Shown here: positions 28,950-49,244 of the stretch, piece after piece
How positions within the stretch are numbered: position 1 is the first letter of the stretch
Layout: every line of letters starts with the position of its first letter
Source: Chara braunii
Lineage: Eukaryota > Plantae > Charophyceae
Length of the DNA stretch: 64,000 bases
Reading direction: 5' to 3'
Assembly: GCA_003427395.1 (NCBI GenBank)
Contig: BFEA01000008.1
Location: forward strand, 7,413,718 to 7,477,717
Translations under genes and position numbers: made by a program
Notes under the pieces: model-generated
The model's database searches: none
The model's input: only the letters and a program-made list of their open reading frames with translations
Told to the model about the DNA's origin: nothing

Positions 28950-29667
28950 GTAGCAGGACATCAGTCATTGCGTTCAGACACGAACACACTGGAAAGCATC
29001 ATACGCAAGCACACCACTCAGGAACTAGAAGAATACCGAGCGCAGGTAATTACGAAAGATATATATGAAGTACGGTGATGTCGGGCGAAAAGACCCAACA
29101 CCGTGTTTCTGTCGGTCCCCGTCCGGCGTCATCAGGGGTCGTACCTAGCGCAAGATAGTAAAACTAAAATTCTACGCGTACTTATATCTACGGAAGTCCA
29201 CGAAACACGAGTACCCAGGTCAATCACCAAGTAGTACAACTAAAGGTTCCCTGGTAACAGGTCACTGGTTCAAAACTCTACAGGCACAAAAAACGAATTC
29301 AAACATATGCCCAAACGTATCAAACGAACGTTCATGGCTCAAGCCCTGTACGACCAAGCTCGTATCTGGTACTGCCTAAAATTTTCTACCTTCTCCGCAT
29401 TACCAAATAACAAGTCATAAAATCAAAACAGTGGTACCAATGGATCATATCCGGACCTACACACATCGGGAGCTAACAAAGGCAGTGATGCCCTCTCAGT
29501 CAGTGCCAATCAACATGTCGTAAGTTCGAACCAGGAGTACCGAGGAACTACATCCAAACCCACACACAGTATGAACTACCGGAGATAGTAGTGCCCTCGT
29601 TCCGATTGGAAGCAGTCGAGGAACTACATCCAAACCCACACACAGTATGAACTACCGGAGATAGTAG
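28950..29667 (-). repeat. 3' pseudo-LTR of element A
   Basis: Direct repeat of 34527-35245. Contains a 76-bp tandem duplication (units at 29541 and 29617). Confidence 0.95.
29082..29140 (-). ncRNA. Minimal type I hammerhead ribozyme (A, 3' pseudo-LTR)
   Basis: Minus strand: gaccc CUGAUGA cgccgg acgggga ccgaca GAAA cac-g-gug UU ggguc uuu ucgcccg. Core intact; stem/loop II mutated. Confidence 0.8.
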
Positions 29668-29696
29668 TGCCCTCGTCCCAACCTGAGCCACCACTT

Positions 29697-32535
29697 CTAG
29701 TTGGTGAAACACAGAAACCAATGTCTCCAACAATTGTTCATTATAGCAGAGAAGTTCCTAAGGCAGTTATCAAAATAGACATCTGGGAAACCCCTAATCT
29801 GTAATTCGAATTTCAAAGTCAACAGAAAGCAGGCTTCAGCACCTGGCATTGTTATAAGCTTCCTAGCCCTATGCGGGCATGTTGTAATAACGGACATCTT
29901 TTGTTGTTTGTCCGTGTATCAGACATAGTCCTGCAGATTTTGGAACAGCACACCTTGTTCAATCACAAACCGTTCATTTTTATGGGTTGCAGCACACAGT
30001 ATTCTGCATGGGTCTCTGAAAACCTTGACCACGCATCCCAGAAAATCCCAAGTGTCATGAGTGCTGGTTAATTCCAACACCAGATTACTATCATAGCAGT
30101 TCTTGAAAATGTCAAGTCGCCTCTCAGCCATCATTCTTGCGTATGTAGACCCCTTCCAGAATTTTGAAAAAACTGTCACGTCATCCACCAGTCTCATCCC
30201 GAAGAGTAACCGACGTTCAGTCCCCAGATGTTTCAGGAACTCATACTCATTGAACGCACACAGCAGACATGCCAGTGCAAGGCTCGATGATTTGCCCATC
30301 GGAATACCTACTTTCTGTCGCAGAAGAACACCCATAGCCAACACATATGTATAGTCTGGATCAAAAGCAACCATTCTAATTACTGATGAGAATCCAATAC
30401 GTCGAAAACCTGCGGGGATTCTCCTTACGTTTACACAGCATGCTCCCTTTTCCTCTCGTCTTCACAAAGACGTTGTAGCCCTTTTCTTCGAACACACACA
30501 ACAACCATTCTACGGCTTTCAATACTGATGCATGGTGTAGGGCAGTAAGCATTTCCTTCACGTCGAAGGACGAGGTAATGGCGTCTTCATCTTTCCCAAT
30601 AGAACGATTGAGGTTATCCAGTCTTTCGACCATGTCATTAGGACATTTCAGGTTGAAATGCGACTCCTCAGGGAGTTTCCACAAGAGTTGGTTGACCGAC
30701 TTAGAGACTGTTCTACTAAGACGTACGAGGGGATCAGGAAAGGAGGGGCATATCGGTCGCCACTTGGCTATATCTTTATGTTTCGGGATTACATAAGTTC
30801 GTTCCATCTTTCCCTGTCGATTAAACGATAAAGATTTGTGTATTCTTGCCTCCTTGAACTTTCCATGAATCTGCCTAAGCACTTGTGATTCCTCCTGTTG
30901 AATCAAATCAAACCCTTTATTCTTAGTAAATAGTGTCTCCATTCCCTTCTTAAAAATAATTGGGCAACATATGAAAGAATCCCCCGGATTATGGTCGATC
31001 GGGCTAACGACCAATCATTCAAATTTCCGTGCCAGATCTAAGACATCATCCCACTCTCCCGAATTTGTCAGACTCGGTCGGTGATCCCGAGTGAAGCACC
31101 CCCGTAGGTCATCCGTAGATATGAAGCAAAACACTCATGTTGTCTTGAAAGCTTTTAAGGCCCTCAAGAATGCAACTTCTGAGCTTCATAGGGTTACGAC
31201 GAAACCCAGGAGACAACACATTCCTGCTATTTTTAACAATGTTAGGCACCCAGTCGACATCACTACACCGAAAAGAAACGTGTCAATCAATTCGTGGATA
31301 ATCAAGTCCCTGACAGGTATAGGAAAGATCCTTATGTTGAGCAGCAGTACGGAAATTATGAAAAATATCTCCTACAGATTTATTCCTAGTCCATACTACC
31401 CTTAGTTTTCTACATAGCATCTGCTTCAAGGAATTCCTAATACAGGAAGATCGAATAGCTGAAAGACAGTTGCTTTGATCCTAATCTTAAGAGAGAACTT
31501 ACTTTTGATCACACGGGCTACAATCGCCCTCAATTTTGCTCTGGTTTCTTTCTTCAAAAAGCACCGTATACAGTTGTACAGCGATATTAGCCTACCAAGC
31601 GGCTCTCGATACAATTTCCTGCATGCAGAGGGGCACTTCAGGAGATCAGTAAGATTACCCTTCAGTTTATCAAAGCGTGAACAAAATCTAAGGATTTTTT
31701 CAAAGAGCAGTTCCGCCCCCGATACTAGTAATCCCCTACAGCGCCTTAGGAGCTCAACCTTTTGGCTAAACCTCACAACAGATGATCCGTAGCATCGCTT
31801 GAGTACTTTCCAATTCTCAGCAAGGACCGCGCCTCCTGAGCACTTAATCTTTACAAACGTAATATGCTTGCGAAAACAGAAGTCAAGTGTATGACGAAGA
31901 CTAACTTACCGGTACCCCGTATCTGATTCAAAAAGAACGAAAGACTTAGGTGTTGCACCAGATTTCAAGGGGAAGTCTCCTCGCCGCCTCCTCTCACTTT
32001 TTCCCAATCTCTTTTTTCCCCTCTCCCGCCGTCTTCCTTGCGTAGAGATGGAGTTCAGAAACGGATTAAAAGACCGAATAAAGAAGGATTGAACTTCCAA
32101 CAATTGTCCCAAGCAGGGCGCAACAATAGGAATCGCTACATAACTACCAACTCTCCCACGACGAAACCAGCGATACAAGCGATGGTTTCTAACATCTTTA
32201 TTTAATGTCCCATCAGCACGGTATATATGCTCAGCCCATCGATATCTCAGCGTCCAAGACGAGCACCCCACATAGATGTGCTTGCACCAGGGAGAAACCA
32301 AAGCATAAACCAGGGGACCGGGACACGAAGTAAAATCATATCCTATAGAGAATAAATAATGAAGATACGGAATAAATTTGACACACCAAGGAATCTGTCG
32401 CAACAAAATCAGGTAGATAACCACCAACCTAAAAACCCCGTCGATCTTACCATCCCATTGCAGACTTCGAATTTCGCGTGCATCTCTACAAACCAAAGCG
32501 AGTTCACGAAGTTCACCGACGGTCGGTGGCCGGTC
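29697..32535 (-). pseudogene. GIY-YIG endonuclease - reverse transcriptase polyprotein of element A (stops and frameshifts)
   Basis: LVYALVSPWCKHIYVG...RWAEH (GIY-YIG). RT motifs YVIPKHKDIAKWRPI, SFDVKEM, RQKVGIPMGKSSS, LVDD (30180-30191), WDFLG. Confidence 0.9.
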
Positions 32536-48400: not shown

Positions 48401-48944
48401 ATGATTATTTAATTCGGGAAAATTTTTCCGTTGTATCTTGAAGGTATTTCAGAACCCAGCGAGGATCATGTGTGCTGCAACGCACAAGAACGAGAGAACC
48501 ATTTTGGAACAAGGCATTGTTTTTCAGAACTTGCAGGATTACTTGTCGTTTTTGCCCAAGCAACAAAAGATGGCGGTTTTGGGTGCTTTCTTGCATAGGT
48601 TGAAGGATTTGAACTGCATGCCTGGCTCTGATTTATGTTTCCTGTTTACGCTGAAGATTGAGTTAGGGATAAGAGGTTTTCCAGACGAATTTTTTGACCG
48701 AGTATTAAGTACATTGTCTGTAAGATTTAACAATAGATGGCAAAGATGGGTACGCTGCCTTACTGGATGGTCCAGAAGGTATGAGGTGAGACGCCTAGAT
48801 ACTAAGTATATTGTGGACACTGCGGAGGCAGATACGGGTTGTGCGGGCAGGTATTTTCCTCCCGTAAAGGACCAGGCAGATCTGTGGGTTTCGGAAACGG
48901 GACTTTTACGAGTGGAACTGCCGAAAAAGGGTGGGTCCAGGTAG
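45440..48944 (+). pseudogene. GIY-YIG - CxC - reverse transcriptase polyprotein of element B (disrupted)
   Basis: VIYALVSPWCKHVYI...RWREH; SCVC (CVC 46625-46633) followed by H; YCIPKHKDICRWRPI, SYDVKEMF, RQKIGIPMGKPSSP, LVDD (47752-47763). Confidence 0.9.
47912..48433. mobile_element. 522-bp AT-rich MITE with TA target duplication inserted in the RT of element B
   Basis: TIR caacagaaaaatt / aatttttccgttg; TA at 47910-47911 and 48434-48435. Removal restores WDY*GCILKVFQNPARIMC, matching A's WDFLGCVVKVFRDPCRILC. Confidence 0.9.
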
Positions 48945-49244
48945 TGTATCAATTCACTGGTACCGAGGGTAGTTTAACAGTATACGAGTATATATTCAAT
49001 TCGTCTAGTTATGTTTCTCATTCCAGTCAGGTTAGACCCCTGATGACGCTAGAATGGCGACTGGTAGAAACCGGTCGGGTCCTTCGCCAGATGAGTGTGC
49101 TATTTTCGACGAATTTTTCAAAGCGCCACCTGCGCTCGGAGTTGTTTGTCTTTTCGTCTATGTCTGCCGTGTCGTGTGTCTTGACTATGTTTCGACCTTG
49201 CGGTGTGTTGTAGTGCGACTTAGCACTGTCATTCTTGTTACTAC
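48833..49244 (+). repeat. 3' pseudo-LTR of element B
   Basis: Direct repeat of 43319-43730; overlaps the end of the RT frame. Confidence 0.95.
49035..49089 (+). ncRNA. Minimal type I hammerhead ribozyme (B, 3' pseudo-LTR)
   Basis: gaccc CUGAUGA cgcuag aauggcga cuggua GAAA ccgg UC ggguc cu ucgcca. Perfect stem I, intact core, GUC triplet. Confidence 0.9.

Follow-up and report, generated by a model that had tools for sequence, protein, structure and literature searches.

A 64,000-nucleotide (nt) stretch of the genome of the charophyte Chara braunii (assembly GCA_003427395.1, contig BFEA01000008.1, positions 7,413,718 to 7,477,717 of the forward strand), hereafter the window, holds two decayed Penelope-like elements (PLEs), A and B, each flanked by direct repeats of the pseudo-long terminal repeat (pLTR) type. 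A first-pass annotation made from the sequence alone had pointed to hammerhead ribozymes (HHRs) in all four pLTRs, with a pseudoknot that covaries between the two elements. We have followed up this claim in the window and at related loci of the same assembly. In window coordinates, the two elements are composed as follows.

28950..35245, minus strand: element A, a decayed Chlamys-type PLE recognized by its direct repeats, open reading frame (ORF) pieces and motif order
34527..35245, minus strand: 5' pLTR of A, 719 bp, 95.7% identical to 28950-29667
33457..34128, minus strand: upstream ORF piece of A with the zf-CCHC knuckle CHYCRRPGHFIRDC (22.5 bits with Pfam zf-CCHC, above its cutoff of 20.8)
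31906..32496, minus strand: GIY-YIG endonuclease piece of A, N-terminal to the reverse transcriptase (RT) and collinear with C. braunii protein P0004
29919..31014, minus strand: RT pieces of A, with a stop or frameshift at about 30375
28950..29667, minus strand: 3' pLTR of A, ending in CTAC
43316..49244, plus strand: element B, likewise a decayed Chlamys-type PLE, its parts arranged as in A
43316..43730, plus strand: 5' pLTR of B, 415 bp, 94.0% identical to 48830-49244
43888..44652, plus strand: upstream ORF piece of B with a zf-CCHC knuckle, its CCHC at 43924
45719..47005, plus strand: distal part of the endonuclease of B with the linker and the CxC motif, a CVC at about 46625
47081..47755, plus strand: RT piece of B (Pfam RVT_1 E = 8e-5, below the cutoff; 502 phmmer relatives)
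48830..49244, plus strand: 3' pLTR of B, starting within the C-terminal ORF piece and ending in CTAC

Read on its minus strand, A consists of the 5' pLTR (a partial upstream tandem copy), zf-CCHC ORF, coiled coil, GIY-YIG, RT and 3' pLTR, with a unit length of 5578 bp; the unit of B is 5514 bp long. The ORF pieces follow one another as a zf-CCHC knuckle with coiled coil, a GIY-YIG-like segment, CxC followed by GHVxFR, and RT, which gives an overall order of HHR, CCHC, GIY, CxC, RT and HHR once the ribozymes are included. A pattern search missed the CxC motif in A and located it in B (46625). Pieces of both elements are collinear with the C. braunii proteins P0004 and P0002, in the first of which the Pfam GIY-YIG match is weak (E = 0.0027). 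By this motif order and collinearity, A and B are permuted PLEs with an N-terminal endonuclease and the architecture of Chlamys-2_cBra. The placement of the endonuclease before the RT, together with the CxC of B, thus upholds the earlier assignment of the host elements to the N-terminal-endonuclease PLEs. An affiliation with the animal Naiad elements was ruled out, since both elements have their relatives in C. braunii. The two elements are only distantly related to each other, with 46% identity in the RT and 32% in the upstream ORF (ORF1), and their pLTRs cannot be aligned except for the HHR block and one further block of 12 nt.

The four HHRs lie one in each pLTR, all on the sense strand of their element and at the sites claimed for them. 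Their positions, lesions and predicted cleavage sites are given below.

43521-43567, plus strand: HHR B1, core intact, with a C.A mismatch in stem I (GAGUC) and a G.A mismatch in stem II; predicted cleavage after 43562 (GUC)
49035-49081, plus strand: HHR B2, intact, the sole copy passing the strict descriptor; predicted cleavage after 49076 (GUC)
29140 to 29092, minus strand: HHR A1, core intact, with one C missing from loop II and a G-to-A mismatch in stem II; predicted cleavage after 29097 (GUU)
34718 to 34669, minus strand: HHR A2, with core lesions CUGGUGA (A6 to G) and GAAG (A15.1 to G); predicted cleavage after 34674 (GUU)

Every copy runs from one strand of stem I (GACCC) through CUGAUGA, a stem II hairpin of 19-20 nt, GAAA, a short palindrome and UH to the other strand of stem I (GGGUC), a layout that, read from sequence, is that of a type I hammerhead. 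The invariant core C3 U4 G5 A6 N7 G8 A9 plus G12 A13 A14 is complete in B1, B2 and A1, as it is in most C. braunii copies from related loci, and departs from it in A2 by A6 to G. It is followed by the A15.1-U16.1 pair, H17 (non-G) and stem I, which appear as A...U, C and GGGUC in B and as A...U, U and GGGUC in A; the G at position 15.1 of A2 breaks the pair. As anticipated, the lesions are specific to each copy, A1, A2, B1 and B2 all being damaged differently, and B2 deviates only in its loop, by a change that leaves 6 of the 8 bp of the pseudoknot. Among the window copies, B2 alone looks capable of cleavage.

The RT pieces gave access to a wider set of elements. With the RT piece of B as query, exhaustive phmmer searching returned 502 relatives, the best of them 45-48% identical, and the closest protein relatives of both A and B are all from C. 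braunii. A word-index protein search with the 212-aa RT piece gave no matches, its length window leaving out full-length relatives. Twelve genomic loci of relatives (L001-L012), all in the same assembly, were taken for comparison, and a covariance model, R1, was built from eight hammerheads with the A copies left out. This model recovers A1 (E = 6.6e-5) and A2 (E = 6e-4), and it finds no further matches in the window. HHRs were detected with it at 10 of the 12 loci, at nine of them downstream of the ORF on the strand of the gene, and L004, L007, L009 and L012 carry HHRs at both ends, 5.2-5.8 kb apart. The model search found no HHR beside the gene at L003, L005 (gene strand) and L008, which are probably degenerate copies or chimeric gene models. 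In all, 16 HHRs lie beside C. braunii relatives in addition to the four window copies. The hammerhead core is thus kept across families that are just 40-48% identical in the RT, a degree of conservation which, at the level of sequence comparison, shows that the hammerhead is under family-level selection. At L005, two HHRs lie on the opposite strand (2711-2756 and 14579-14626, both minus) in another PLE; one carries G8 to A and a different 5-bp pseudoknot (CACGG/CCGUG), and the other adjoins an assembly gap.

Covariation provides the more specific evidence for the fold. MAFFT alignments of 9 or 11 HHRs brought the 3' flank out of register because the length of stem III varies. Formal pair counting was therefore kept to a six-sequence alignment of four families (A6), and for the wider set complementarity was scanned without a fixed register and against control windows. 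In A6, 88.7% of the cells are paired, as compared with 28-47% when partners are slid, and changes on both sides occur in seven pairs, a number reached by none of 500 shuffles. Stem I is 93% paired with one compensatory pair, stem II 81% with four, and the pseudoknot helix 92.5% with two. The indel of L001 was scored as one broken cell and one gap, its pairing being intact in register. Within this alignment, stems I and II are shown to covary.

The pseudoknot joins loop II to the sequence 3' of stem I. Its 3' strands in the window are as follows.

43569..43576, plus strand: B1, UUCGCCAG, pairing with loop II CUGGCGAA over 8 bp (shuffle p = 0.0002)
49084..49089, plus strand: B2, UCGCCA, pairing with loop II UGGCGA
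34660..34665, minus strand: A2, UCGCCC, pairing with loop II GGGCGA over 6 Watson-Crick (WC) bp (shuffle p = 0.004)
29082..29088, minus strand: A1, UCGCCCG, the partner loop being damaged in this copy

The covariation of this pairing, first proposed from A and B, holds up in the pair counts and extends to more families. When the centre of hairpin II was scanned against the first 15 nt past stem I, runs of 6-8 WC bp were found in B, A, L001, L002 and L012, and runs of at least 6 in none of 90 control windows. L010, which has an undetermined base (N) in its strand, probably belongs with these families. By eye and in register, the helix has an invariant GGC/GCC centre and four variable flanking positions, at which the pairs are C-G or A-U; U-A, G-C or C-G; G-C, A-U or G.U; and A-U or G-C. 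The comparison thus shows, for about half of the families, that loop II can form a covarying WC pseudoknot of 6-8 bp beginning 2-4 nt past the 5-bp stem I. Support in an RT tree of 143 columns was too low to decide on an ancestral origin of the pseudoknot.

A second invariant block accompanies the hammerheads in the pLTRs.

49128-49139 and 43614-43625 (plus strand), 29036-29047 and 34613-34624 (minus strand): invariant block ACCTGCGCTCGG, about 50 nt 3' of the hammerhead in all four pLTRs

This block may be an RT-initiation or promoter signal. A related sequence, GTCGCGTTCGGGAGA, occurs 151-174 nt past the HHR start at L002, L004 and L011. The pLTRs also have in common the CTAC at every 3' end (28950 and 34527 on the minus strand, 43730 and 49244 on the plus strand), although A and B are unalignable there, and these ends suggest a fixed unit terminus. 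The sequence immediately next to the pLTR ends shows no evident microsatellite target. The longer A pLTR contains a repeat of about 63 bp (29541-29603 and 29617-29679, also 35119-35184), the copies lying 76 bp apart with 98% identity, that is absent from B. Two larger inverted repeats lie in the element bodies. In A, a near-perfect hairpin with 171-nt arms (34059-34229 and 34235-34405; 98% complementary, 5 nt apart) separates the 5' pLTR from the zinc-knuckle ORF and attracts spurious Rfam matches to microRNA precursors; it may be an insertion resembling a miniature inverted-repeat transposable element, or a foldback. In B, weaker arms of 146 nt (47996-48141 and 48205-48350; 71% complementary) separate the RT from the C-terminal ORF pieces and probably represent an insertion that helped break the ORF.

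Taken together, these data make it probable that A and B are old Chlamys-type PLEs that inserted independently of each other and are inactive today, and that they carry a type I HHR in their 3' untranslated region, one that is selected at family level and assisted by dimer formation and a pseudoknot. The B ribozyme starts about 90 nt past the stop codon, with its predicted cleavage site 168 nt short of the unit end, and the motif recurs in both pLTRs because the insertions are partial tandems. In active members, the RNA would be cleaved after GUC or GUU. Two motifs would pair via the stem III palindrome into a double hammerhead, in which the pseudoknot would hold stems I and II parallel, a task that falls to loop-loop contacts in other hammerheads. 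If a read-through transcript were cut at both repeats, a permuted RNA of unit length (5.5 kb) with 5'-OH and cyclic-phosphate ends would be set free, and the need for motif pairing would restrict cleavage to transcripts with two copies. More speculatively, this RNA might be ligated into a circle and reverse transcribed from a fixed internal site, yielding one unit and a variable partial second round. Such a fixed start is suggested by the CTAC at the end of all four pLTRs, and a variable second round by the different lengths of the upstream repeats (415 bp versus 719 bp).

The palindromic nature of stem III, already perceived in the first-pass annotation, is evident in A, B and the relatives, which have this stem in palindromic form only: it reads ACCGGU in B, ACACgGUGU in A, and ACAUGU, ACGCGU or ACCGGU in the relatives, with CCGG, CAUG or CGCG as the inner four bases in seven families and CAC-G-GUG in A. 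That the perfect palindromes differ from one another by paired changes supports pairing between two copies, and PLE HHRs have been described to possess a palindromic helix III and to act as dimers (PMC4209133). Action as a monomer, with a pseudoknot that stabilizes the fold enough and a stem III palindrome that goes unused between molecules, appears unlikely to us. Monomeric hammerheads are sped up by pseudoknots (PMC3088659), and some of the stems could fold on themselves, that of A closing a 3-bp hairpin with a CGG triloop and that of L004 forming 2 bp with a 5-nt loop. However, stem III of B, L001, L007, L009, L010, L011 and L012 is a 6-nt perfect palindrome (A-NNNN-U) in which no hairpin can be closed, and the paired changes that distinguish CCGG, CAUG and CGCG are explained by pairing between two copies only.

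Several observations weigh against a functional, pseudoknotted hammerhead in these elements. The ORFs are broken in both A and B, which, with 4-6% divergence between the repeats of each element, indicates that both are dead; three of the four window HHR copies carry lesions. The pseudoknot signal of L004, L011, L006, L007 and L009 is no more than chance, and given these five families without a convincing pseudoknot the contact is not required for the class. The core itself departs from the canonical form. A, B, L001, L010 and L002 have one nucleotide after A9, which is usual in PLE motifs (PMC4209133); the nucleotide that follows CUGAUGA is C or U in these five and A in L004 and L009. Less usually, the same five have an extra nucleotide (A or U) between C11.1 and G12, so that the G10.1-C11.1 pair does not abut the core. 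In neither A nor B does this pair lie directly against A9/G12, and in L004, L007, L009 and L012 a G-C pair adjoins G12. The resulting layer between stem II and the core is C.A, with U-A in B1 and U.U in L002; in A and B, where the base before G12 is an A, it amounts either to a C.A (or U-A) layer or to a G-C pair flanked by two bulges.

Failed model matches and foldings point the same way. The Rfam hammerhead models do not match A or B at gathering thresholds, relaxing the limit to E<=10 on either 22.5 kb or 131 nt brings up no hammerhead match, and the more canonical relative L007 reaches just 17 bits against Hammerhead_3, whose gathering threshold is 48.5. The extra nucleotide next to G12 and the 20-nt stem II hairpin would explain these misses, and for the same two features fixed descriptors might miss such motifs; the spacer between the core halves is 20 nt in A and B, and the 'HHR_core' descriptor of Craig et al. 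allowed 7-17 nt (PMC8557442). Controls on relatives show the Rfam models to be insensitive to the minimal class, and we do not count the Rfam result against hammerhead identity. Neither minimum free energy (MFE) folding of monomers nor cofolding of homodimers gave the hammerhead fold, and folding z-scores are ordinary except for an alternative fold of A2; such folding carries no information on a motif that depends on a pseudoknot and on a second molecule. Published experiments add to these points. In the sole PLE studied in vitro, HHR cleavage was protein assisted and dispensable for insertion, and no RNA-seq reads of that PLE end at the HHR cleavage site (PMC11167929). The published PLE HHRs, moreover, cleave poorly in vitro (PMC4209133).

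Some of these points would also fit a block conserved for another job, such as an RT or endonuclease binding or initiation site or a promoter, that does not self-cleave and is similar to a hammerhead only incidentally or as a relic. Such a role agrees with the nucleotide inserted between C11.1 and G12, with the Rfam misses, with the dispensability of cleavage for insertion and the lack of RNA-seq ends at the site (PMC11167929), and also with the second invariant block nearby, which indicates that the region holds other signals. We nevertheless regard it as improbable. Families 40-48% identical in the RT have kept 11 invariant core nucleotides, A15.1-U16.1, H17 and the three-helix geometry, and their helices covary in a pattern specific to the hammerhead fold. 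The likelihood that the motifs are mere chance matches is negligible. The strict descriptor has one match in the window (B2) against 0.045 expected per window in simulations with a first-order Markov chain of the window, so that a single strict match carries roughly a 4% chance per window. Four copies occupy homologous positions in two diverged elements, however, 16 more lie beside C. braunii relatives, and they covary; the comparative data already refute chance. A hammerhead kept by the families and acting in pairs is the reading we retain.

An assembly gap at 36223-36502 falls in the spacer between the outer edge of A (35245) and the start of B (43316), with the HHRs, pLTRs and element ORFs all clear of it. 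ORF calls across the gap are artefacts because N was translated, and the A-to-B distance alone depends on it. The window contains 1173 N in total, with further gaps, e.g., near 49700 and at 61640-62250, none of them within A or B. At 37115-37215 (plus strand), a sequence resembling U6 small nuclear RNA scores 48.9 bits against an Rfam gathering threshold of 44; its central region is well conserved and its 5' stem poorly matched, and it may be a gene or a pseudogene. A 328-aa ORF at 20814-21800 (plus strand) has a C-terminal part that, judged by eye, resembles the zinc-binding tail of the RT of plant long interspersed nuclear elements. One host ORF has a C. braunii counterpart with 71% identity, and dispersed repeats common to the window and C. 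braunii loci are 75-92% identical.

Hammerheads in N-terminal-endonuclease PLEs are not new for this lineage. Craig et al. (2021) describe such PLEs as devoid of canonical HHRs apart from two exceptional Chlamys subclades, one of which is the C. braunii type Chlamys-2_cBra, which has a zf-CCHC ORF upstream and an HHR at the 3' end (PMC8557442). The absence of canonical hammerheads from N-terminal-endonuclease PLEs, stated in the first-pass annotation, therefore stands as a generalization and lends A and B no novelty, the C. braunii exception having been published. As described there, Chlamys-2_cBra resembles A and B in the upstream zf-CCHC ORF, N-terminal GIY-YIG, CxC, pLTRs and 3' hammerhead. 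A and B are just 40-48% identical in the RT to the sampled C. braunii families. The hammerhead of Chlamys-2_cBra is termed 'canonical' there, whereas those of A and B combine a stem II hairpin of 20 nt with an added nucleotide that separates C11.1 from G12. The dimer-acting HHRs of canonical PLEs (PMC4209133), in turn, share with A and B the type I order, presence in both pLTRs, sense strand, long stem II (5-6 bp), unpaired nucleotide after A9 and palindromic stem III. What sets A and B apart from them is the covarying WC pseudoknot past stem I, the extra nucleotide on the 3' side of stem II and the permuted domain order. The pseudoknot goes unmentioned in Cervera and de la Peña 2014 (PMC4209133), and minimal dimer-acting PLE hammerheads were also treated by Lünse et al. 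2017, as cited in PMC6765202.

Pseudoknots that fix stems I and II are known from hammerheads of all three types through the work of Perreault et al. 2011, who reported them in about 40% of hammerheads and, by mutation and rescue, found them to be needed for speed (PMC3088659). In those ribozymes, at least 4 bp that link the regions of stems I and II take the place of loop-loop tertiary contacts, as the pseudoknot would in A and B. The published type II consensus pairs loop I with the tail 3' of stem II; here, in contrast, the partner of loop II is the tail that follows an open stem I on its 3' side, and stem III is of the dimer type. The additions made by this work are thus modest, namely a motif that is near-universal across very diverged charophyte families, a pseudoknot in about half of them and an extra nucleotide in a subset. 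A covariance model from these sequences could serve to re-screen Naiad and Chlamys families reported to be hammerhead-free. Our tentative proposal, which we offer with more doubt than conviction, is that the charophyte Chlamys-2 elements might carry an undescribed subclass of PLE HHR that combines a palindromic dimer-type stem III, a covarying pseudoknot and a conserved non-WC layer (C.A or U.U) before G12. If the pseudoknot makes these ribozymes fast at physiological Mg, unlike the sluggish motifs of metazoan PLEs, they would offer a workable system for the role of HHRs in PLEs, among other things for asking whether cleaved and ligated RNA serves as a circular template from which rolling reverse transcription would generate the partial-tandem pLTRs.

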